44,063 bases of DNA from Convolutriloba macropyga. Lineage: Eukaryota. The position numbers and the translations under genes are program-made. Positions 8,362-37,866 of this stretch are shown one piece after another. Within the stretch, counting starts at the first letter, position 1; each line of letters starts with the position of its first letter. The stretch spans positions 72,373,938-72,418,000 of the forward strand of contig NC_134469.1 of NCBI RefSeq assembly GCF_964194025.1. Direction: 5' to 3'. Under the pieces are notes generated by a model. The model did no database searches and had not been told where the DNA came from. It worked only from the letters and a program-made list of their open reading frames with translations.

Positions 8362-11300
8362 CTGTAATGAAACTATTCGATGGCAAAAATGACAATAGAT
8401 TTGTAGGCGTAATTTTTTCAAAATAAAAGCAATAAACTAAATTGATTTTTTTTCTATTTATTTCAACCGATCCGTGCACTTGAGCCTATTTTTGCGTTCA
8501 ATTTCTGCCACGGACAGGATGCCTTTAACTTCCGCTACAAAAGCCAGAATATTCAGAAAAATAGTTGGTTAGACGGACTCTGGTTTAAAATTTTTCTAAA
8601 TGAAATATTTATCGAGAAAATAACGAAAATGGTCGCGATTATGAATAATATGTATTAATTGATTCTAAATATTTCATATTACAATTCGCACTAATTTCGA
8701 AAAATAAAAATGTTGCCTTGCTCCAAAAACTTTTCCTTTTAATTCAAAGAAGTTGCGGGGTTGCGTGAACGAGGTTGCCTGATTTCCACACACAAATTAC
8801 ATAGCATCGTCAGTCGTTTTCGAAAGAAGCGGATAAAGGGATCTCAAGTTAAAAATCGAAACTATTAAAACAGAAGAAATTCTTGAAGGCCGCCATGTCA
8901 GACAGTGACCAGTTGATCGGAAACTCACGAGAGGGCATACTTCTATTATAATTTTTAATTTTAATTAAAATTATATCGAAAACGATGGTGGAATAAAGAT
9001 GTGGGGATCTAGGGTTCAGATGAACTAACACATGCCGACCATTGAGAAGAACCACAGTCGTATCAATCCATGTTGGTTATTATCGTGAAACCTGGGCTAA
9101 TAAGCCTACTCTTGAAAACTATTCATCTTAAAGTTAGATTGTTAAAGTTAGATTGTACGTACTTCAAAACTGATCTATTTCATTAGCCGCAAATTTCAGT
9201 CTTTAAAATTGTGCCTATCCTTTTTGTCTTACTTTGGCGTCGGCTATTGCAATGTTTCCGTCTCCGTCAGAACATATTGCTACAGGTCCGTTGAATTTGT
9301 TCAACCCCCTTCCACTGCCCCCAAATCTGCCCAGTCTCTTGCCTCTCTTGTCCACGATGTAGACAAAGTCATACCTAATATCCCCTATTAGCAATGTCTC
9401 ATCCATAGTCCAGTGTATGGCCCAGGGACAGCCGTTATCTTCGGAATCGAGGGTAGTTGATGACGATGTGGCTGTCAGTGCAACTGATGTCTGAGAACTG
9501 CCCAAGTTGGTGGAGTTTTGTCTATCTGAGTAATTGGGACCCACTTTGAATTTGAAGAGGAAGTCTCCGTTTGACCGATCAAATGCTTTCACTGTTTCGT
9601 CTCCTGAAAATGAAAACCAATTCATAGGGCCGAAAAAAATTGATGAAAAAATTGAGAACAACTGCAAAATTTTAACTTTGTTATTCTTAAATCAATTCTT
9701 AAAAACCGAAGAAAAAGCTGGAGTTTACTGAATTATACTCTTCAATTAGCCGATTACAGTTCCCTGCTGATCTCTAAACTGTTTTGCAAAAATTGCTAAA
9801 CATCACCTGAGAGATCATTGAAAAAGATTTTAAGATTTTAAGCGCCGTTTCGATGGGTCGTTCCTAGAATAGTAGCATGACGCTAATATTTTTTCCACGA
9901 GCTTTCGTTATAGCACTTTAAGCTAATCCGGATCTCTCGTGTCGTTGCCTCCAGTATGTTATGCACTGCAGATACTAAATACACGGCATTCATAATAAAA
10001 ATTATGTTAAACGTCAGCACGCGTGCTTCAGGATAGCAAATAATGATATGCACCTAATGAGCTGCAAGGTGGGAAACTGAAATGATTACAAGATATCATC
10101 AGTTGGATGTTTTGAGAAATACTATTTCTCAGTTTTCAAATCCCCAAACAATTGTGAAAAACAGTTATTTTGTGAATAGAAAGCAAAAGTTTTGTTTTGA
10201 AAAACATGGGATTTTTTTTGTTGTAGCCCCACTCTTTTGAATTATGGAAAAGGTGCCGTGGAAGCATCATGGAACACGCGGAACACATCAATCATGGAAC
10301 TGTTGTCATTACATAGTAAATCATTTTGATATACTGCAACAAGCTCGCTGGGCGGCGGAAAAAATATGCACCCACTAAGCTGGCGGCTCAAAATTATTTC
10401 AATAAATGATTCGCATTCGGAAGGTTTTAGGCTTACCAGGCCTTTGTAAATCATTTTGATATACTGCAACAAGCTCGCTGGGCGGCGGAAAAAATATGCA
10501 CCCACTAAGCTGGCGGCTCAAAATTATTTCAATAAATGATTCGCATTCGGAAGGTTTTAGGCTTACCAGGCCTTTGTAAATCATTTTGATATACTGCAAC
10601 AAGCTCGCTGGGCGGCGGAAAAAATATGCACCCACTAAGCTGGCGGCTCAAAATTATTTCAATAAATGATTCGCATTCGGAAGGTTTTAGGCTTACCAGG
10701 CCTTTGTCACATCGATTTGCGTTTGGTACATCGATTTAGAATTGCTAAATCTTGCCCAAGACCTGAACAAGACTGACAGGTTAAAGCGTGACACGATCAT
10801 AGGTCGGAAACAGAGCTGATATTCAGACTTGCGATAATATTGCCTTGGCATTATATCAGCGATTACTTCACCTGCATCTGAGACATACACCCTATCTGGG
10901 CTGATGGCAACTTTGCCCGGCCGCATCAGTTTATGTCCCCTTTCTAAAGTGTGGTTGGTCCAGAGCTGTAGAGTCTGACCAGAGAGGAGGTCAACTTCCC
11001 TCACAGTCTGGTTGAAACTGTCCACTATCCACAGATGGGAGTCCCCATTGGATAATTGGATATCTGTGACGTAAGGAGCACATCTGTGTTAACACAAAAC
11101 ATCTTTCGGTACAAATTAAGGAACTGAAATTAGAGAGCAAGGTGTTGTTGCACAGCTAATAGCTCACAAAGTGGGCCGGTTGCGGAAAAAAACCCACGGA
11201 AAAAACCCACTTCATTTTATACAGGAAATAAACCCCCAGGGAAATAAACTCCCACATAAATAAAACGCCACGGAAATAAATCCCCACTTTACTATTAAAC

Positions 11301-17297: not shown

Positions 17298-20200
17298 AAG
17301 TAAAAAAAACCGCAAAAACGAATTTGGATCTAGCAAATTCGGCAACTGCAGATAAATTAGTTCAACACTAACATTTGAAATTTGTTTTATTTCAGTGTTG
17401 CTGGTATATAAATTGATAAAAGTAATTTTGCAAAGATGGCTATCTTTCAAAGGAGCTCAAAAACAAAATTACTAAAATTATGAAGGAGGCAGTCGACAAT
17501 TCAAGAATTGGATTCCAACAAACAAATATTAGTTTTAATTGGTTTTGGACCTCTTTGGTTAGAATTTATTATGCCATAAATTTGCTAAAATATTATTTCT
17601 TCAAGAATTGTACTTGGACCTCTATTGTTTTTCATCTATATCAACAATATGACTTCTGTGCTGAACAACACAACAATTAATTTCTTTGCTGACAACGCAG
17701 CATGTTTAAATACATGTTCGTCAGCCGACGATAGAACCAAAATTTATCTCAGATCTAAAATTGGAAAAGAATTTTTCACTTCCCATAAAGTTGAGGTGAA
17801 TGGTGGGAAAACACAAACAAAGTCAAATCACATTAGTCATTTTGCGATCTCAAAGACAAAAGAACAAGTCTAACCAGAACTCAACTTGAAAACGGGTTTT
17901 CACTACAAAGGAAGACAATAATATATTTTTTTAATTCTTGAAAGACTGTGTTTACACGGTGGATTTTATACTATCCAATAAAATTCCATTAAAAACTTTG
18001 GACTGTATTTGCATAATTTTTGCGATAACTACATTAAAAAAATATACAACAAACTATAATGTTTTATACTATAAAACAAGGAGGCTCGTTAATGTGCGTT
18101 AGCACATGATGTTCCGACCCGAGCTCATCTACATTTTTGACCTAATTGTCAACCAAATGAAGAGATAATCAAAAACATATGTTTGAGTTAAAAAAATCTT
18201 TTTAAACCCAAACTACTAATTGAATTACATAATGTCATGCTTCATGAAGGCACTCACAAGATCTGCCATTAAGAAGAATACGAGAAAAAAAACAACAAAA
18301 TCAGCAACAACAAAAAGAAACTCAATATCTAAACTTAAAAGCAACGTGTAATAACGTCAAAATGCAATCGGATAAAACCTTAGCTACACAAATTTACTCT
18401 TTTTTAACTACACAGCAGATGGGATTTTTCCTTGATGGTACTAGGTAACAAGTCGACACAAAGAAATAAAGAGGCAAACTTCAAAAATCGATCAACATTT
18501 TAAAAAACAATTCATAACCTCATACGTCTAAAAAACCCTAAGCCTTTAATGAATTCATTCTTGATAAAGTTACAAAAAAGTCTTTAAGAAACCGATACGA
18601 CCTGTATTTGTGTAGAATAAGCCATAGAAATTGTAGAAAATCAAATTGCAAAAACAAATTACAGAAGCCATCAAAATCATAAGATTTATCTGAAAATTGT
18701 TTCTCTTATTTCAATTATTATCTATACTATATCCACTGAAATTTTACTGAACGATAAAATAAATTCACTTGGTCTATATTTGAAAATCATATGGATCTGT
18801 TATTACGCGAAAAAAGATAATTCTAGAAAAGAACAACAAAAACAGAAAAAATTAAAGAACTTTGAAAACGAAAAATATCCTAAACTTTCACGGTTTTCGC
18901 TGTACACTGACTGCATTGAGTGAAATCATTAATTCGATCCTCAACAGGCTGCTTATTAGACCTCTCAGCGTTTTAGAGCTACAAAAAGAATAAAGAACAG
19001 TCAAAAACAGCAAAGTAAAAAAAGAGAGAGAAAAGTGTCGAAGCCATTAAAAAGTGAACTTTTCAGTAAAGGCTTTCCCGCTTTATTTCTTTTATAACAG
19101 CAACAAGATGCTTCCTCGTTCCAAAAGCTGACTTCGAAAAATCAACAAAAGCGAACAAGCATATCAAAACCACGAAATTTTTACGAAAAACACGTAAAAT
19201 CAACGCCAATGAAATCAATAACTTTCAAAGGAAATCAATAAACACGCTAAGTTATGCGTCGATGGGAAGACTATGATGTTTGTCATTAATAATTCATCAA
19301 TAGGACATCAGAATAAGTCCTATGGTTATGAAAACAACAACAACAAATACAGGCAAAAACCAAAAATTCTTTAGAAAAGTGCGAGAAATTGCGAAAACTC
19401 ATGGCATCGAACTCATAAAACCAATAGTTGGACGTCAAAAGGGGTAATCAGATAAATTAAGGTTGCAGTAGAAAAGAAAGAGGTCTTGTCATTAGCGAAA
19501 ATGATATAGAATTCAAAAAATAGGTTTAAGATTGGTTAATGTTCAAAAAACAATTCGAAAAATTATTTTCAATATCTTAACAACCATTAGCTGTCCACTC
19601 AAAGCATTAGATAGGTTCACTTAATGCTCTTTAGGGTCCTATTACAAATTTAGTCAACGCGTCTAAGTTATACGATTATAAAAATGTAGGAAAAATCTCA
19701 AAAAGAGAATCAAAGGTTCAGTAAACATTACGAAAAAGTCATAGAAGCCAGAAGAAAACAAAAGCGATCCCTCGAAAACGATTTTTTTTTCATTGGGCTT
19801 CATTTGTCTGTAAGTGAAGTTCGTCATTAACGGAATCTTGATATGGAAAATGACTAGGCTATAAGTAACTTTAAGAAACAAAAAAATGCAAAAAAATTTC
19901 TAAAAAACAGCTCTCAAAGAGATTTCGAATTTTTTTTGTAAAATTACCCATGAGACCAAAACTATCACTTTGTCGTCTTTCGTTTATTAGGAATGGCAAA
20001 ATGTTTCATTTAGTAGCGCGAAAAGTGGTCTTGATTTGATATTTTAATAGAAACAATCTTAATTTGAACGAAAATTAAGCTACAAGTGAACAAAATCATG
20101 CCAAATGTCCTGTGTTCACACAAAAGTTTAAACATCGATAACTCCTCGGAAAAAAGAAGTTCAAAAAAACTTTTTAATTCCTAACCTTACGTTGCACGAG

Positions 20201-23200
20201 CTTTTTAATGATACCACTCACATTTCTCTACGATGAATATATCGATCGGCCAAAATTCTCTAAACAAAAAAAAATCCATTTGAGTATATAGTTCCTCCCC
20301 CCACAAGTGGGGTCGGAGCAAAAATGACAGCAAACCTTGCACTGCCTTCCTTGACGTGTTTCTTGCAAAACCTCCCATAAATAATTTTTAAAGTTCTACG
20401 GCTCTCCTTTGAAAAGCATTGCGTTTTTTAAGAGTCTGTTCCGAAAGAAAAGAAACTTTGTAAAAAATTCTTTATTTAAATTCAATTTTTATTATTATCG
20501 AGACTCAGCATTTTCAAAGCCATTCTTTATTACATCGAATATCTAGAAAAATGTGTATAAAACTAGCGTTTACTATGCAAAACCATTTGATTAGTTACAA
20601 AATCCAGGTCGAAAGAATTAACAAAATGTTTCCAAAATCTCCAAAATCTTAAAGCAGGACAAGTATTATTGCTAATGACAATGCTACAACGAGAAATAAG
20701 ATTTGGTTAAAACCATCAATTCAAAACTCAGAAGTTCGATTCTTTTTTTTGCACAGAAATGAAGTCAAAATGTGCTTTTGCAACAAAAAGTAATAAATTA
20801 ATAGTCCTTATCTAGAATAATGTTTTAATACATATCCACATTCTTTCAACGAAACTTTAAAACGCAGACAACGACCCATATTTAAGATTACAAATTTATT
20901 TTTCATAAATGGAATAAATAGTTCACTCGGACACTTACCTATCGTCCAACTTGTCAACTATTGTGGGGGTTGAAATTAGAGGACTTTTTGCCGGAGATTT
21001 GCTGGTACTGTGACGTCTTTGCAACAGATTGGCAATGTTGGGTGAGCGATTCCTAAGATCAGCTGGAATGTCCGGCAGATTGGGAACGTCAGACAATGAA
21101 TGTTCTTCATCCTCTTCCGCGTCATCCTTTTCATCGCCAATTGTGACGTCATTGTCGATAACTGATGAATCCTCGGAGTGATTGCGAGGACTGTTAGACA
21201 CTCTTGAATCCGGATCGTCAGTTGCGGACCAGTGATCCTGGGCTAGTTCTGAGTGATAGACACCGGCATCTTCGCTTTGCGTTGTCTGGTACTGCTCATT
21301 CGCGTCAACATCGTCAGTAGTGAATTGATAGTTGATGTTTTCTGTCCCATTCAGTCCGGCTGGTTCTTGATAGCTGTCTCTGTCTGATGTCACAATGGAC
21401 TCAATGTCAAGTTGACTAACCCTCGATGGACTTGGAGCAGATACTTCAAGCGAGTTTTGGCTACGCTAAACAGTGAAACTCTTTCGTTTTCAGATTTATC
21501 ATTCAATCAGCACTGCAATCTGCGTTTCCAATTAAAATGAATTATTTTTATTTGTTTTCGAAAACTGCGCTAGCCATTTAAATCGATCACATTTGTGAGT
21601 CAGAAATAATTTTTTTTCACTGCGTACAAAATATACGGAGTTGTATTTAATGTTCCAACATTTTTCAAAATCGGGGAATATATATATGCAAGGCCGGCAT
21701 TTTTCATCGCATGCAGAGATAGAGAAGCGATAGGGAAGCTTGAAAAGAAAAACAGGAAAAGGAAGAGAATGGGTGTGGGGGTAATAAATTATATATATAA
21801 TTTTATTGTGATAAATTGTTAATACGTTATAATAATGCATAGGTTGTAATAAAAATCAAATGTTCCGATGACGTCTTAAATTTTTAAAAAATAATTGGAA
21901 TTTTCTATTATTTTAGATGTTCTTCAGCTATTTACGAGCTATTTAGCAATTTGACAGAGTATTTTTCTACAAAAAGTAATCAGAAGCTTGCACATCAAAC
22001 GTCAATAAAATGAAAACTAGCCAAGAGTTACATAATATCAGTTTCATTTCACGGATCAAAATTTTTGGATCAAGCAAATGAAAAAACTTCAGAGAAAAAG
22101 GTTTTAATTCACACGTTCAAGCAGTCATTTTACTGATTAAGAATACAATGATTATCTCAGATCGGCAAATATACTCCCAATCTCATAACATATCTTCATG
22201 GATCTTGTGATGTTAAACAAATTTGTGGCAGGTAAACTTCCACTTCCGGCAGTGCAATTTTGGGAAATGAAAAATGGACATCTCAAAACACAATCTAACG
22301 AGAAGAAATTTTAATACTTTTCCAATCAAAGTCCATATTCAAGTCCTTTCAAATTCAAAAGAGAAGTCAGAGAATACCTATTTGATTTAGATAAGCAAAA
22401 TTTTAAGTGTAAATCATACCCATACGGATACACAGTGTGTGAAATAAATCAAATTAAAAACCCGTTAGCCACTCATTAATCTTGGTGAAAACAAGTACAG
22501 GGAATTTTATTATTATTATTGTTATTATTATTATTATTATCCTTAATGTTTTTGTTTTTATTATTAGCCATTTCGTTGTTTTTTTTTGCATTCATTGGGA
22601 TTTGAGAGGACGCTTTTTCTCAAAACACTTCTGGTTTTTAGAATATTGCCGTTTTTGTATTGTAAAACAGTGTTTTTTTATTGGAGAGAAAAGACTAAAA
22701 ATCACAATTTTCTATTTTTCGCCTGTTTCAGGAATTTTTCAAAATTTTCTTCATTAAAGGAAAATTCGAGGAGCGTTGAATGGTTGAAGGACTTTTGATG
22801 CTTTAAATTGCACAGAAGAGAAAACAATTTTCTTAAGATGTTCTAGTATCTTAAAAAATCAAAGGAATTTTTGATTTTTTAAATTAGTCGTGTTTATAAA
22901 AAAAATAATTTTTCTTTTTGTTGGGTGAATTTTAAAAATTTTGTAAATCAGTTTATTAAGTACTAGTTTATCGAAAAACTGTGTTTTTGTCATAGAGCAC
23001 TCTTCGGGTAAGTTCCCGAATTCATCCAACTATGTTTTTTTCATTGAACCATTCAATGACGTTTTTTGTTTTCACGTCCAATTTCCGACTCAGCCAACTT
23101 CTTTTTTCTACTGAGAAAAAATTTAGAATATTTGCACATTGCTGTACGAAAAGTAATGTACACAAGCCTATCCAAAGCAACGAAATCAAAAATAAAAAAT

Positions 23201-26291: not shown

Positions 26292-26461
26292 TGTTCCCAA
26301 TGATATTGGGAATTCAAGACAGGAAATAATGGTGATGATTAAGCAACCCGCCAAAACTATAAAATTCACTCTTTCTCAAAACAGTTGCCGAGAATTCGCA
26401 ACTACACAACTATAGCTACCAAAAGAGGAAATCAAACAGACTAGAATATATGTTTATAACA
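26292..26461 (+). repeat. BEL 5' LTR (170 bp)
   Basis: About 22 substitutions and 2 indels versus the 3' LTR (~87% identity, manual count). Followed by TGGAGACC...CGTGATT, a possible decayed PBS. Confidence 0.9.
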
Positions 26462-28679: not shown

Positions 28680-30014
28680 ATACTTTTGGACAAAACACTT
28701 TCTTCAGTTGCGGAACGATTTTCTAACCTTCTGTCGAGCTTCAAACACGAAGTTGGCAGTATGGATGACGATGTACTGCACAGCCAATCCTCAACGAGAA
28801 TACGCGATGACTTGATTGTCACACAAAAACTTCAGCTCTCAAGAATTTTAGCTTTTCAATACAACAGACAATTAAGAATCAGATGCGTACGCCAACAAAA
28901 ACACATCAGTGGCAGCAATCAACAAAACGCTGCCAAACAAGAAATGGTTACCACCACATAAGGCTTCAAAATCTCAGTAAAAGCATCAAACGTCCAACAG
29001 CTGCAGTTGCTACCAGCAACCCGGCTCGTTTAAATAACATTCGTCCAGAAAACCACTCAGTCAAACAGCAATCTTAACGAGGAAATACCAACAACACAGG
29101 CATCTCATCGAAATCACAAAAGAGTCCCTACGGACAGTCCTTTACAGCAAGAAGAGGGAATCAATTTCGACACACACATTTGAACAATATTTCTAGTTAA
29201 AATTTTAGTGTGAATTACTTACATTCTACACCCAAAGAATGGCTTGAACAACTTCAGCTAATTCCAGTCTCCTTATTAAACGGAAATGAAAAGCATTCAA
29301 TACGTACACCTTGATTGACTCAGGAAGCCAATTGAGTTTCATTCCTGAAAATATTACAGAGTTTCTTACTCTTCCCTGTGAAGCTCGAGAACCTACATCT
29401 CATTATCTTAACATCGAACACGAGATGCAAACTTCAACAATTGCACAACCATTGACTGAGATATCATTTGAAAATTTGGACAAAAAGTTTCAAATAAGAA
29501 CCAAGTACAGCACGCGCTTTCTAAACGCAACACCCACCATTAGATTTTTACTCCACCAGATATGCGATGCATTCAAAAAATTTCGTCGTATTAACTTCCC
29601 AGAAATCGCGGAATGCAAAATTGGTGCGCTTTTGGGAATCAACAATTTTTTCTTCACGCACCCATTTCAAATCAACCCTGCAACAAAAAACCAGCAATTT
29701 GCTGTAAAGACGAAGCTTGGATGGACACTCCCTGGAATATGTGAACAAGTCCTGAACTGCAATGAAATTAAACAACGATCACAATTACAGAAGCCTTACG
29801 TATTCCATTTGCCAGGGCAACGCTTACACAAGTTACTGGAACAGTTTTGGAAAATCGCATCCAAATTTACCCAGCCCCAAAACAAAATTCTGGATGCTAA
29901 CAACAGAGAAACTCTTGACACATTGGAGAAGACAAAGAGCCACATTGGCGAAAGGTACGAAATTTGATTACAATGGAAAAACGCAGGGAGATCCAAAAGC
30001 AACTTTCTTGTATC
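28680..30014 (+). pseudogene. BEL gag C-terminus / aspartic protease region (decayed)
   Basis: Decayed knuckle CQTRNGYHH; protease LIDSGSQLSFI (29311); IGALLG; AVKTKLGWTL; LEQFWK; RYEI*LQWK (BEL RYxVxLPWK). Confidence 0.85.
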
Positions 30015-30422
30015 TTTTGTGCGATACCTGTGTAATACTTGTTAAATGTTATCTTAATTTACCGCAGTAAACCTCATACGATGCTATAACTTAGTTCCTA
30101 AAGTTCTTAATTATTAGCCATTCACACTTCAGTTTTAATCAGACAATATTTCATGTTTCCCGCTTGCAACTTACTACTTGTTCAGGGTTATTTCATTTCC
30201 CGCTACGTCATTAGACATGTCTGTTCACTCCATTTTATTTTGTTGATAACCACTTCAGTTCATAATCTTGTCTTGTTCAATTTCAGTTGTCACAATATCT
30301 TTCAATTTCACTCCGCAAATCATGCTCAGAATTAGGTAAGAATTTCCCCTGGCGAGATCCATCATTAATTCAAAAGCCTGTATTCGCGTAGTGAATTCGA
30401 CAGTAAACTAATAAAGTACGAC

Positions 30423-31446
30423 ATGGCGCACTCAGCAAACGAACGAACTCAATTGGGAATTGTTGCCGTTTGGCAACCTCTTTGATGAAGAAAGTGGAGG
30501 GTACAATACAAATTAAACTCACTCGCCGAGGAGAACATCATATTGGCTACACTTCTTGGCCCTAAACCAGAAATGATAGAATTGCCCCTGGAGTTAATAT
30601 ACGAAGAAGTGGTCATCCGTTCTTCGGCGCAATCGGAACGTGAACGTAATGCCTGAAACGCACAACAAGAGATAAATCAGCAAAAAAAATGATAAAGACA
30701 CGTCGAAGCTGGAATAGTATGTGGAAATGAAAGATGGCCACTCGCTGATCAAAAAACGTCTCTTTACCCCATCTTAGTATTGATATGGAGCGGCGTCGGA
30801 TTCTCAACAGCAGAAACGCAAACATAATGACAGACACTCTCTCTACAGCAGAATTTTGGAAGATTGTGGAGGACGCATTCATCAGACCCCGGAACATAAA
30901 ATTTGACAGGTACCTTTTCCTTATCAAAAAACAACTCCGGGTTGAAACAATTGAGCATTTTATGAAAAACTTAAAGAACTAACAGAAAACTTACTTTGGA
31001 AACGAAGAAGAAACACTAATCAGAGACGTTTCAATCACCAACCTACTCAATCCTGAAATACAAAAAGAGCTTTTGAAACAAACAGTGGAACCGATGGAAG
31101 CTCTTGAACCGGCTATCAACAAAGAACACTGGATGCGAAATCAGCAACAAGTAAAAACTCACAATAAAACCCTCATTCCGGCCAGCGTCAATGCATTTCA
31201 ATACCCGCCCAGCAGTCGCTTTTCAAACTGGTCCCTCAAAAACAATTTCCACAGACAAGTAACTCGACCACCATTTCTACACTGCTCTAATTTTGACGCA
31301 CCATGGCTTCCTGGACATCGAGACAAGTGAATTGCTAAAGGTAAAACTTGTAACAACTGTGGCTTATAAAACATTATGCCAAAGTATGCAGAAAACAAAA
31401 AAGAAAGAAAGCACTGAATCCAAAGAAAGAATCGGACAGAAGGTGA
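30423..31446 (+). pseudogene. Gypsy/Mag-like gag with zinc knuckles (frameshifted)
   Basis: FWKIVEDAFIRPRNIKFDRYLF.IKKQ...ETIEHF; LIRDV; EIQKELLK; tandem knuckles ...H..K(C)IAKGKTCNNCGL..HYAKVCRK typical of Mag-clade gag. Confidence 0.85.
30424..30437 (+). promoter_or_regulatory. Primer-binding site, tRNA-Ser-like
   Basis: TGGCGCACTCAGCA directly after LTR-terminal CA; resembles the Gypsy tRNA-Ser PBS TGGCGCAGTCGGYA (from memory, not checked against this species' tRNAs). Confidence 0.55.
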
Positions 31447-31546
31447 TTGAAGAACAAGTAGTTAAGAACTAAACTATAGCATCGTATAAGATTTACTGAA
31501 CTAAATCATGAAAACAATTAACGACTATTTCACAGGTATCACAACT

Positions 31547-34500
31547 TTGTCAACTGAAAATCCTTCACAGGCGTCTCAGGAACAACAACCGCTTGAAAGA
31601 GATGTATGAAGAAACACATGAATCAAATCTTTAGAACTGCTACGTCATATAAGTTGAAATGCTACCGTCTCAACCCAAGAAAACTTCGTAACTGCCTCAT
31701 TATCCAGTAGTTAATACAAAAAAACCAGGAAACTACGCAGAATAGCAAATGCTAATTTCGAGGCCAGTCCCTGAACTCAAATTATTTACCGAAACAGATT
31801 CACTTAGCAATTTAGACGGAATGCTTCAGAGATTTTGTGAAAACCCAATTGCCACACTTTGTGATATCAAGGACATGTTCATGCATTTAGCAAAAAAGCA
31901 TGAGGACCAACCTGCGCTACGGTTTCTTTGGCCCAAAGAAAACTTGTTCAGCCATTATCAATTCCCCAATCTAACATTTGGAGCAGCTTGCTCTCGTTTT
32001 TAAGAATTTTTAAACTGGAACCGTCGCGAAGACAATAAATTTTAATCACATAAAGCAGTCTACGCAATAAAGAAGAACATTTTTTTAATGGAAAACTATA
32101 TTCAGTTCTTTCTATCTATAGAAGAAGCAATCGAAACTGTTCAACAGACAAAAACAGCCTTGAGGAAGTTGGGTTTCACCTGACTCAATTGTGTCAAATG
32201 AAATTGAAGTTCTAACATTTAACCAAAAGAGCAAAAAAGACTAATCGAAAGAGATATTGAGAGTTCCAGCTCTGAAATAGAATATCAAAAATGGCCGTTT
32301 TCTAATTAAGACTTTATTGACGCCTATACGCAAGGGCCTATACGCAAAGAGAATTATAAACAATTTTTGACCAACTACAAAAACTGTCTCCACTCGCAAT
32401 CTGAACATAAATGGTTTAACAGCAAATATTTATAGAAAGCAAGCTGAAAAATGAGATAAACCTCATCTTTGTAATCTACACTTCACTTTGCAAAAAGTAC
32501 CAGTTACTTTGCAATGCCAGATATCGAAAACCCCAGATGGTTAAACACCTCAGCGAATAGGAACGTAACAACGAGCTTTTTGTCGTTATTTCAACTGTTG
32601 CATTTTCAGCGGTTGCCTACATTCGCATTGAGGAACAAGAGCATGATTTACAGCGTCGCATCTTCTTGTGAAAAGCAAAGCTGAAACAACTAGGCAAATT
32701 AGTGGGCCGAAATTAGATCTTGAAGCTGTCGCGTTATGTTATTGCCTCCGTATATTAGTACAAAACGAAAAGAAACTGGATTTTGGAAAAGCTTCCTTCT
32801 GTACGGAAAGCCTTATTGTCTTTGATTGGAAAAGCTTGACTAAAATAATAAAATGTTTTTGTTTCAAATAGACTACAAGAAGAAAAGACAAGTAAAAATG
32901 AAGAATGGAACAGCATCCGAACTAATAATAACTCAGCAGACAATAGAACGCGTAGCTTTGAGTCATGAAAAACTCAACAGAGATGGCTAACGTCACCAAA
33001 AATTTTACAGGACAGAGTGAATTCTTGAAAAGATATACGAAAATTTTCAACCGTTGGCGTCATAACTAGAAAACAAAACAAAACATTTCAACCTGTTATT
33101 GACCCCCAATCTTTTTATCTAGAAATAGACCACTTTTAATCCTCGCAACAGTCTTTATTTTGATGTTCAGAGCCAAAAAGCATCGTTTAGACAAAAATAA
33201 ATGCACTAGAGATGATGTTTGTTCGTCATGAAAATATGAGTTCAAACTATTACAGAATAAGGCTTGCTCTCCAATAATCAGTGTCTTCAAACGGAAAAAA
33301 AACTGAAGCAAAAAACAAATTCACAGATTGAGCCCAATCCTTTACCAGGATAGACTTTTTAAATCAAGTGGCGACCCTATTTTTGCTCCAACAGAATTGC
33401 AGATCAAAAAGTTTCCAATAATTCTAGATGCAAATGTCAAAGTCACAAGACTATATGTTGAACAAACAAACAACATTTAGGCTTCTCAAGCAAAGCAACC
33501 CGTCAAGGCTTTTGTGCAACCGTTAATTCCTCATCGGACTAGTAGAGACGCTGCTTACAAAGAAGCACTGTTTTCTGTGCCACTTTTTTTCAACACTCGG
33601 AACCTACAAGCAATTATGGCCCTACTTCTGCAATTTACTTTCCAACAGAACAGACTAAACTCCCATTCGCTAACACGGGACTGGATGTTTTCGAACCGTT
33701 TTATATTGAAATCAAACAGAGTCAAATCGAGAGACACTATGGACTCATTTTCACATGCCTCGTTACGCGGAAACATGTCCAGGCTTGAGTACTGAAACCG
33801 TTTTTCAATACTTTTCGGAGATTCACTTGCCGCAGTTGTTAGCAGAACTTCCTTCACAGCGATTACGGAAAAATGTTTGATGGCGCATCGGAAGAGTTAC
33901 AGAAGTGAATAAAGACTTTAGGCAAAAACAAAGTTATCAAAAAAATTGGTTGCAGTCAAACAGCATAGAATTTCAACCCGCCTAACGGTCCTAATTTTGG
34001 TAGGCTGTGGGAGCGTTTGGTTCGCAGCGCCAAAAAGACGCTGTTGATCATTGATCATTATAGGATCTAAACGGCTCTCCCTCGACATCTTCCAGAAAAC
34101 AATGGCTGAGGTTGAAGCAATCCTCAATTCAAGGCCATTGAAGAACAATGAAGATCAGCCCCACAACGAAGAGCTACTAACTCCGAACCAGTTCCTCATT
34201 CAACGACCGTTTAGTTCACTGGCACCTGAAAGCTTTGGAGATCAACGACAAAGCTATTTTCAAGAACTGCAAGCACGTTCAGCAGTTGATGAATCACTTT
34301 TGGCGAGGCTTGCTAAAGGATTACCAGCCGACTCTAATCAGGAGACGGAAAAAAACAGACAGCAATCAGCTTCCCTTGAAAATTGGAGATATCGTCTGGG
34401 TGCTGCGGGATCTGACTTCGAGAGGTATTTGGCCAACTGGAAGAGTCGTGGACACAACCCCTGGAAAATATGGCAAAGTACGAGTTGTCAAGGTGAAAAT

Positions 34501-34718: not shown

Positions 34719-34895
34719 TGTTCCCAATGACATTGTGAATTCAAGACATGAAATTGTGATGATGATGATGGTCATTGAGCAGCCCACCAAAACTATAAAA
34801 TTCACACTTGCGCAAAACAATTGCCAAAAAGTCGCAACTACACATCTATAGCAACCAAAAGAGGAAACCAAACAGACTAGATTAAATGTAGAACA
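34719..34895 (+). repeat. BEL 3' LTR (177 bp)
   Basis: Direct repeat of 26292-26461, followed by TSD TTGTG. Confidence 0.9.
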
Positions 34896-35399: not shown

Positions 35400-37647
35400 T
35401 TTATTTAAAAAACGTCTGGTGGAACAAATTAATACCCCAAGTGATGAGGTTAACTTACGAAGAACCGTTTTGTAGGTTTCATTCAAACTACATTCAAAAA
35501 GAAATTTATCCCAAAAAAACGCATACGCATCAAAAGAAAAAATGGCGCAAAAGACGGTATTTTCTGAAGATATTACCAAACTGCACAAAGACCAAGTTGA
35601 ACCGACAAAAGGAACAAAACAATGTTATGCAGGGCGAGAAATAATTCTCAACCGCTACAAACAAGTGTAAAGTAAAATTTTTTACTAATGTTTACTTGCT
35701 TTTTAGGGGCCTCTGATGTTCGCAAAATTGAGCCGTCAGATGCATACAACCATATTGAACCAGATAAAGATAAAAACGAAATCTTTACAATCAAAACATC
35801 CATGTGCAGGCTACCATTTTTACTTTTTCAATTTTCAAAGGAATCAAGGGTGGTCTTCTTCGAAAACAATCTTCTATATATGGAAAAAGAAACGAGCAAA
35901 AACAGAAAAGAATGCCTGTGGTCAGAAACCAACTCCGTCAAAAGTTTTTTTTAACTCAAAGGGAAAGACATTCATCTCAGACGTTAGATTTAATGATTTA
36001 TCTGATTCTAAAAAACGAATATACCGCCCAATTCTTTCTATACATGATGAAAAAATTCAAAGAAGAAGAAGAACCACTGTTAAATTGATCCTTCTAGATT
36101 CTGTTGTCGGATCAATAAAAACAATTAGGAAAAGGTGCAAAAATCTTTTGATAAAATTAAAAACGAGTTAAGACAAAACTCACTAGTGCAGCCTAATGGC
36201 ACGACAAGCAGACCTGACAACAAACGCATCAAAAAATCAATAAGAAGGCTTCTCCTACATTCAGCGTCTCCTACGGAGACATTCTGTGATTACGGTTCTA
36301 GAAAGACGTTAAAAAATGATCCAATAAAGAGGGAGAGGCACACGTGGTTCCAATTGTGAAATTAGGTCTAGACTGCATACTGACCACAAACCTCAAAATC
36401 ATCTGCTTGCAAGAAGACGTAGTAAGCTCTGATGGAATTTGACTTCCAATTCATAAAAATCTATCAAGAGGTAAAATCCCGGCTTGTGATTCAATCAAAA
36501 CTGAGCTGGAAATGAATCGAAAATTCAAAGATATAAATAAAAATAACAGGTGGGGACAGTAATCATAAAAAGAACATAAAAAGAATTGTGCTCTGCCACC
36601 TCTCAGCGAAATCAACTTTCATTGCGTTGTAGCTTCACAGCCTGAGGTGCCAGACCGAAAGTCGATATGTCCAGACTGTCCCAGACGGATAGTGCCTATG
36701 TCCAGACTAATCCAGACGGAAAGTGTCTATGTCCAGACCGTCCCAGACGGAAAGTTCCTATGTCCAGACTATCGTGCGTTCATAACTTTTAGTTCTTCGG
36801 TCTGGACATATCGGCATTCGGTCTGGCATCTCAGCCTGGGTTTAATTTCATTCAGACAACCAACTGTCTAAATGGAAGAAATTCGGGAGACCATCCTGGG
36901 GAACTGTAAAGAAACATTGTTGCAAATGGTAACCCGACATCAGTCAACATCTGTTAATAACTGTAGGGAATGTCAAGAACACAGACCTCGCTTCGGCAAA
37001 ATAGTTTTAACGACAAAAGAAAGTTTAGGAAAGGCTCCATGTCGACTAAGTTCAATTCAAGGATAGAGGTCAATTTTTTGTGATCGTCGCGGCGGAGTCA
37101 GAAGGGATAGAAGTGAAAAAATGTGAAAAATGGAACCTCACAGGAAAACTTTGAGAGAATTGGGATATCGAAAATGCAATGCGGAGCTCTTCTACTGCGA
37201 GTTTTCATGACACATCGAAAGACTTCAGACTTCCAAAACAATGAACAGAGATCTTTTCCAACTAAAGTTGCGCCGCAACGGCCACTGATCTTTATTTAAA
37301 AGCAATAGCCATGCTCAAAACGACAACCAGTTCAACACTTCCAGGCAGCGTCTCTATCTGCAAAGTAATTAATAGTTCGTTCATCTTTTTGGATAATTCA
37401 AACAGTACAGAGTTGTAAGTGAGAAATATATTGCACGGCTGTTAATTGATGACATCAAAACGGAGTCAACCGAACTAACAGCTGGGACCAGTAGGGCCAT
37501 TATAGAAGTAGCATCGCCTAACACCATTGAAGCACCTTCATCAACTTAATTCAATTTTTTCAGGGGCACGCGACTCTCAACCAAATATGAGAAATATTTT
37601 CAAAGATTTGGCAAAGCTATCCTTACAAAGTTTTAAAAAGAGGGAGG
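35400..37647 (+). pseudogene. Heavily decayed Gypsy-type pol (RT-RNaseH-integrase) ending in a polypurine tract
   Basis: LGASDVRKIEPSDAYNHI...FTIKT (cf. L.GA..FSKIDL.DAY.QI...TINT); TDHKP at 36379; HPG at 36892 and VNNCRECQ (integrase Zn finger); FFVIV...IEV; purine run AAAAAGAGGGAGG just before (TA)n and the gap. Confidence 0.65.
36638..36838. mobile_element. MITE (201 bp) with 39-bp TIRs and internal 31-bp minisatellite
   Basis: TIR CAGSCTGAGRTGCCAGACCGAAWGYCGATATGTCCAGAC at both ends; TATGTCCAGAC recurs at 36666, 36697, 36728, 36759; no clear TSD. Confidence 0.85.
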
Positions 37648-37666
37648 TATATATATATATATATAT

Positions 37667-37866
37667 NNNNNNNNNNNNNNNNNNNNNNNNNNNNNNNNNN
37701 NNNNNNNNNNNNNNNNNNNNNNNNNNNNNNNNNNNNNNNNNNNNNNNNNNNNNNNNNNNNNNNNNNNNNNNNNNNNNNNNNNNNNNNNNNNNNNNNNNNN
37801 NNNNNNNNNNNNNNNNNNNNNNNNNNNNNNNNNNNNNNNNNNNNNNNNNNNNNNNNNNNNNNNNNN
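37667..37866. other. Assembly gap (200 N) preceded by (TA)n
   Basis: Directly visible; contiguity across it is unproven. Confidence 0.99.

Follow-up and report, generated by a model that had tools for sequence, protein, structure and literature searches.

A truncated Ty3/gypsy-like retrotransposon copy with an LTR start at each end, nested in a BEL/Pao element of Convolutriloba macropyga: possibly one insertion of a two-U3-ended cDNA

The DNA analysed here, which we call the window, is a stretch of 44,063 nucleotides from the genome of Convolutriloba macropyga. Judging from homology, it contains a BEL/Pao element, in the pol region of which a second retroelement is nested. Host pol lies on the plus strand on both sides of this insert: the left part (29290-30017) matches 40 or more genomic copies at 73-77% DNA identity, and the right part (31544-32160) is in register with it. 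Two relatives within that range of identity (L033 and L037) carry the Pfam domains DUF1759, RVT_1 and Peptidase_A17. The host's own ORFs gave no Pfam match, and it is on these relatives that the BEL/Pao identity rests. The host also has a pair of LTR-like direct repeats, both on the plus strand, at 26292-26453 and 34719-34889, which are 82.5% identical over 171 columns with 21 mismatches.

The insert occupies 30018-31543 and consists, in order, of a 406-bp LTR, a primer binding site (PBS), a degenerate gag with two zinc knuckles and an inverted LTR start. The 5' LTR (30018-30423, plus strand) is Ty3/gypsy-like; its extent follows from genomic LTR matches that span query positions 1 or 3 to 406, and from family alignments of the start and the end. 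It begins with TGTGCGATACC, where the family norm is TGTGATACC, and ends with GTACGACA. Its termini are thus of the TG..CA type (TGTG...GACA), and a tRNA-type PBS follows immediately. In the family alignment of LTR starts, the 11-nt start form TGCGCGATACC is met in one other copy, L011. The PBS (TGGCGCACTCAGCAAAC; 30424-30440, plus strand), directly 3' of the LTR, is kept in nine other family copies, and the family form TGGCGCA(g/c)TCAGCAAAC is conserved across ten copies including the insert. The gag (30450-31438, plus strand), recognised by homology to other family copies, contains several stops. Remnants of its two CCHC-type knuckles are found at about 31283-31330 and about 31349-31387, both broken by stops or substitutions. 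A Pfam search with the window's own gag pieces returned no matches, and the identity of gag, too, is taken from relatives.

Homology to every other family copy stops at query position 1421, which is 31438 in the window, inside the nucleocapsid-protease linker. From there the sequence turns into an inverted start of the family LTR. According to the family LTR alignment, this right arm (31440-31543, minus strand) corresponds to LTR nt 1 to about 104. It terminates exactly at the canonical LTR tip (the reverse complement of TGTGATACC), and its nearest relative is the LTR of L004 (83-84%). The corresponding left arm is LTR nt 1 to about 108 (30018-30125, plus strand) and contains a 9-bp insertion at about 30090-30098. 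This insertion is private to the left LTR: neither the right arm nor any of the 16 other family copies has it. It measures 9 bp in the window and 8 bp in the other haplotype described below. Where gag and right arm meet, at 31436-31456, lies a zone (GT..GAAGAAC) that is alignable to both parents. The stretch in question, of about 15 nt, can be aligned to the family gag continuation (GTAGAAGAAGAAC) as well as to the reverse complement of LTR nt 90-104. It would represent an imperfect microhomology at the inner junction, as judged from relatives that are 75-85% identical rather than from the parents themselves.

Pol and a direct 3' LTR are absent from the insert; its sole LTR is the 5' one, and the opposite end is the inverted LTR start of 104 nt. 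The repeat search found no further inverted match inside the insert beyond the arms, its contents being LTR, PBS and gag only, and neither a transposase, nor a tyrosine recombinase, nor an internal complementary region is present in it. The inverted arms described in the original prediction are therefore real, and what they bound is a truncated LTR-PBS-gag copy capped by the inverted U3 start of an LTR.

The parent family is an ordinary, old family of Ty3/gypsy-like LTR retrotransposons. Full copies are about 6.4 kb long, as seen from LTR pairs that lie in the same orientation about 6.4 kb apart, for example on C13 (11.660/11.666 Mb), C5 (6.152/6.159 Mb) and C4 (50.117/50.123 Mb). In the relatives gag runs on into protease (LLVDSG) and then into reverse transcriptase (RT), and one of them, L012, has both the two knuckles and LLVDSG. 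RVT_1 was found in L006, L015 and L019; the loci examined end inside RT, and the Atlas neighbours of the family RT carry RVT_1 together with RT_RNaseH_2. All copies examined are degenerate, with pairwise differences of 20-30% in a star-like pattern. Wherever elements of the family stand in tandem, a polypurine tract (PPT), ..CAAGGGGG, is found two bases upstream of the LTR. In such tandem contexts the LTR is preceded by ..CAAGGGGG T[T/A] TGTGATACC, and short-read unitigs also contain a loose end, AAGGGGTATGT. In two loci (L004:1100-1510 and L012:1100-1510) about 400 bp of homologous internal 3' sequence with the PPT (..CAAGGGGG T[T/A] TGTG) stands directly before LTR, PBS and gag. These stretches are tandem elements with one common LTR, and they show the two bases between PPT and LTR.

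The family also builds tandem arrays at several loci. At C5:62.908-62.918 Mb (L013, L024-L026) LTR nt 171-406, PBS and gag to nt 1148 form a unit of about 1 kb that recurs about nine times. LTR pieces recur every 0.4-1 kb at C4:45.231-45.240 Mb, four LTRs stand at a spacing of 4270 bp at C1:81.089-81.103 Mb, and LTRs are spaced by about 3.8 kb at C10:24.179-24.187 Mb. Two units with a spacing of 2422 bp are seen at C10:416-420 kb (L016, L017).

The structure of the insert is found in two separately assembled haplotypes of the region. The window shares its order with contig C4055 for 24 kb or more, the two being 94-97% identical, and insert and junctions are the same in both. This contig is the second haplotype of the region, the two assembled haplotypes being about 4% apart, and both alleles are present in the reads of one sample. 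We further searched the short-read unitigs of four runs from three samples. Two unitigs, one of 315 bp (29916-30230) and one of 279 bp (31387-31665), together span all three junctions. Each matches the window with 0 differences in one run. In the remaining three runs the 279-bp unitig departs from it by 7-9 differences, and the 315-bp unitig does so by 3 in one other run; this is the second allele. Unitig depth at the junctions is like that of the flanks and single-copy. The structure is thus genuine, single-copy and polymorphic at the nucleotide level only. Elsewhere along the two haplotypes, compared as L061-L064 of C4055 against window positions 11511-35305, 20-40 kb of C4055 and 11.5-25.3 kb of the window differ in length by about 6 kb.

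A search of the genome for the junction between gag and inverted LTR, which had been proposed together with the original prediction, leads to a single locus in the form of two alleles: the junction was found only in the window (C2) and in its allele C4055. The other genomic matches to the junction piece each cover the gag side or the arm side alone.

The insertion site itself can be judged from host relatives. In all 28 related BEL/Pao copies examined the site is empty, and the flanks of the window map to adjacent positions, abutting to within 3-5 bp. The host is therefore contiguous across the insert, as had been claimed, and the possibility that host sequence is missing at the site, which would have pointed to two insertions and a deletion, is contradicted by comparison with the same 28 relatives, against which the host sequence at the site is complete. 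With the boundaries 30018 and 31543 the window has 21 bases where the 28 relatives have 18, so that the flanks overlap by 3 bp. At both host junctions the exact LTR tips (5' TG / CA 3') are present, the left end in the L011-like form TGTGCGATACC.

The few bases at these junctions can be read in three ways. The left flank TCTTT (30013-30017) and the right flank ACTTT (31544-31548) may be two copies of a target site duplication (TSD), identical at four of five positions; alternatively, the last TT of the left flank may be a dinucleotide that belongs to cDNA only and precedes the LTR, and the first A of the right flank may be the complement of a cDNA-only T. The TSD given in the original prediction is hence present as written, but other parsings are possible. 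In the first, (a), TCTTT/ACTTT is the candidate 5-bp TSD, which leaves the host out of frame, with 2 bp fewer than its relatives. In the second, (b), the LTR is placed in the canonical register TGCGATACC, TG belongs to the host, the TSD becomes TTTTG/ACTTT (two of five identical) and the host length is right. In the third, (c), there is no TSD; TT is kept on the left and A, the complement of T, on the right, and the host reads GTATCT followed by CTTTGTC, with 18 bases and in frame. The occurrence of the same 11-nt start form in L011 favours the left boundary of the original prediction and speaks against (b). The match of the host to its relatives is best in (c), with 12/18 as against 11/18, a difference that is not significant. 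Parsing (c) matters because T[T/A] are the two bases between PPT and LTR, as carried by unprocessed linear cDNA. TT directly before the LTR occurs in none of nine ordinarily integrated copies; in the insert, the left LTR is preceded by TT and the right arm by T. As for (a), a match of four in five in T-rich sequence is expected by chance in roughly 3-10% of cases.

Whether the two arms were copied from one template or from two is a separate matter. In the best-aligned part (30020-30101 against 31462-31543) the arms are 80% complementary over 82 nt, with 16/82 differences, or 19.5% (BLAST E 1e-15). If the 9-bp insertion of the left arm is allowed for, 104 positions can be aligned, of which 26-28 differ (25-27%). 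This is more than the divergence of about 18% in the original prediction; the arms to which it referred are real. Each arm differs from other genomic copies by 17-20%, i.e. it is closer to these than to the other arm. A comparison with the family copies by per-column counts revealed no exclusive derived site common to both arms; 12-13 changes are private to the left arm and 15-16 to the right arm. Moreover, the host's own direct repeats differ at 21/162 sites, less than the arms (26-28/104), although the insert must be younger than its host. Since the arms are more diverged than the host repeats and have no exclusive derived site in common, different templates may have given rise to the two U3 ends. 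The caution expressed earlier about arm divergence is thus well founded. On the other side, the terminal branch of the insert is about 10% over 1.4 kb, from which about 20% would be expected between arms that were identical at insertion, to be compared with the 19.5% observed over 82 nt and the 25-27% over 104 nt. With a star-like family tree, arm distances of this kind are expected even for arms identical at insertion. Given the small samples and the star-like tree, arm dating is compatible with one template or two.

In our opinion, a contiguous host and an exact LTR tip at either outer end are most economically explained if a compound linear cDNA, ending on both sides in a natural U3 terminus, was inserted once. 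A single integration using two U3 ends had been suggested from the letters of the window, and it is still the simplest reading, with the reservation that the part played by integrase has to be weighed against end joining (see below). According to this account, linear cDNA of the Ty3/gypsy-like family would have contributed its natural left (U3) terminus to both ends of one compound molecule. The first part would begin at the U3 tip, comprise LTR, PBS and gag and stop at about nt 1430, and the second would consist of only the first 104 or so nt of the LTR, in reverse. Their two inner ends, broken or unfinished, would have been joined where gag and the reverse-complemented LTR look alike (GT..GAAGAAC), either through a template switch while the plus strand was being made or because two broken cDNAs underwent microhomology-mediated end joining. 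In the former case the growing plus strand would switch onto another plus strand, whose 5' end is U3 nt 1, and this would explain the exact tip of the right arm.

As to how such a molecule entered the chromosome, we tentatively favour integrase, with somewhat less than even confidence. Using a U3 tip for each of its att ends, the enzyme would have inserted the compound cDNA, joined inside by microhomology, into the BEL/Pao pol, duplicating 5 bp (TCTTT/ACTTT); the host before insertion would then have read ..GTATCTTTGTC.., with the pentamer present once. The right arm ends at the canonical terminus, the candidate TSD agrees at four of five positions, the junction zone is compatible with both parents and the host flanks abut, all of which is consistent with this reading. 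Besides, the U3 and U5 tips are alike: the U3 tips end in ..CACA-3' on the transferred strand and match the normal U5 tip at six of the last eight nucleotides. Against it stands the fact that, with a 5-bp TSD, the host before insertion would lack 2 bp that all its relatives have and would be out of frame; it also has to be said that this is one event only, and a very old one. Lacking pol, a PPT and a U5 end, such a copy could never have moved again. After insertion it would have decayed by about 10% per lineage, and it would now be represented by the two alleles about 4% apart.

The nearest competitor, which we regard as possible but rather doubtful, dispenses with integrase and TSD. Here the same compound cDNA, or two fragments, would have been taken up in the repair of a chromosomal double-strand break, through non-homologous or microhomology-mediated end joining, and the host before insertion would have read ..GTATCTCTTTGTC... 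The outer ends would then be unprocessed cDNA ends that still have the T or TT found between PPT and LTR, and indeed the insert shows TT on the left and T on the right; the nine ordinary copies never have TT before the LTR. Removing TT and A restores a host of 18 nt, in frame like all relatives and with the best match to them, and the microhomology at the inner junction suits this route as well. However, the same T's can be read equally well as a TSD, and the advantage of 12/18 over 11/18 is not significant. Captured cDNA pieces are also usually short. Finally, exact natural termini facing outward and broken ends facing inward are one of four orientations for random capture, whereas for integrase this arrangement is automatic.

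Other explanations survive less well. A complete element may have inserted normally, and a later fold-back or template switch at GAAGAAC/GTTCTTC may have copied the start of the 5' LTR backwards and deleted the rest up to the 3' end. The microhomology at the inner junction and the proneness of this family to rearrangement, with its many tandem arrays, would agree with such an event. Yet such a copy would need to break off precisely at LTR nt 1, and the deletion to finish precisely with the final base of the 3' LTR; both coincidences are required because the host is contiguous to within 3-5 bp and no U5 remnant is left. We consider this improbable. Very improbable, in our view, are two independent insertions of the family in opposite orientation a few bp apart, followed by a deletion that began in the first copy's gag and ended inside the second copy's 5' LTR. 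It would account for arms that are not each other's closest relatives (25-27% from each other as against 17-20% from other copies) and that have no exclusive derived sites in common. But the flanks abut within 3-5 bp in 28 relatives, and essentially the same phosphodiester bonds would have been hit twice in a genome of 1.18 Gb; moreover, the star-like family tree accounts for the distances without two events.

The original prediction also considered a non-autonomous gag-only family with terminal inverted repeats, and one may add to this a DIRS-like element or a DNA transposon that captured gag. The inverted termini and the possible TSD are what such a mobile family would show, but the junction exists at one locus, as two alleles; all other copies run from gag through protease to RT with direct LTRs, and the inverted arm is simply the start of the family LTR. 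At the sensitivity of the junction searches in this genome we find this extremely unlikely, and kinship with DIRS elements or DNA transposons as such was rejected on account of the single locus and the direct LTRs of the family. An assembly artefact is conceivable in a region so rich in repeats, but with two separately assembled haplotypes carrying the structure and unitigs from three samples crossing every junction at flank-like depth its probability is negligible.

How does the insert compare with known systems? Retroviral integrases carry out concerted integration in vitro even when the two ends of the donor are the same LTR end. The U3/U3 reactions of ASV/RSV and HIV assays are like the present case in that two U3 tips serve as att ends and a short target duplication is expected; they differ from it in being test-tube reactions with engineered donors, whereas the insert is a natural germ-line sequence of an invertebrate gypsy-like element, upon which integrase may have acted. 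PMC7240061 gives about 20 nt of U3 or U5 end as sufficient for retroviral integrase donors. Compared with such needs, the LTR end of about 100 nt in the insert is ample.

The parallel for end joining comes from yeast, where Ty1 cDNA is captured at double-strand breaks, including inserts with cDNA-only nucleotides (PMC11372161), and from mouse zygotes, for which capture of LTR-retrotransposon cDNA at breaks is described in PMC4516963. As far as these two sources go, break capture resembles the insert in several respects: cDNA fragments, sometimes replication intermediates, are used, cDNA-only nucleotides are kept, microhomology is found at junctions, and there is no TSD. It differs in that the captured pieces are typically shorter and have random ends, whereas the insert is 1.5 kb long and both its outer ends are exact LTR tips.

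Three more kinds of element invite comparison. DIRS elements are retroelements with inverted terminal repeats, like the insert, but they have a tyrosine recombinase and an internal complementary region, lack a TSD and form families, whereas the parent family here has direct LTRs, a PBS and a PPT. Gag-only elements of the TR-GAG type consist of LTR, PBS and gag without pol, and they have two direct LTRs and many copies; the insert, in contrast, is unique, truncated in the gag-protease linker and devoid of PPT and 3' LTR. Defective proviruses with internal inversions or deletions, which arise by template switching of RT, still have U3 on the left and U5 on the right. They have in common with the insert a cDNA that, in our reading, was rearranged before integration, and a short-homology junction; the difference is that the right end of the insert is a U3 tip. 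A literature search for inverted LTRs, inverted dimers or two U3 ends found no description of a genomic LTR element with U3 at both ends.

It may be, then, and we put this forward with the same hesitation as the role of integrase, that the locus is a natural germ-line record of the integrase of an LTR element inserting a two-U3-ended DNA and creating a derivative bounded by inverted repeats in one step. If true, the U3/U5 asymmetry of retroelement integration would not be obligatory in vivo, and one route would be at hand by which retroelement derivatives with inverted-repeat ends arise. An integrase-mediated event would provide rare evidence from within a genome that att ends are interchangeable in vivo and that rearranged cDNAs are still integrable. 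Were end joining responsible, the locus would instead show, for an animal, how a chromosome break was patched with retrotransposon cDNA that kept its cDNA-only nucleotides. The locus as such holds an element of a known kind in a structurally rare variant: a single, dead and ancient copy with no sign of function or spread. Its value lies in being a worked example and in supplying a pattern for genome-wide searches, namely an inverted LTR start flush against contiguous host sequence.

Several other repeats are present in the window. A run of 200 N at 37667-37866 is an assembly gap or masked sequence. At 10316-10707 a unit of 130 bp occurs in three exact head-to-tail copies, and 36650-36771 is made up of 31-bp tandem units (CCAGACGGAAAGT..TATGTCCAGAC.) that are 80-88% alike. 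An inverted repeat of 176 nt (1566-1741 against 20149-20324), with 81% complementarity and 18.4 kb between its halves, probably represents two oppositely oriented copies of another repeat.
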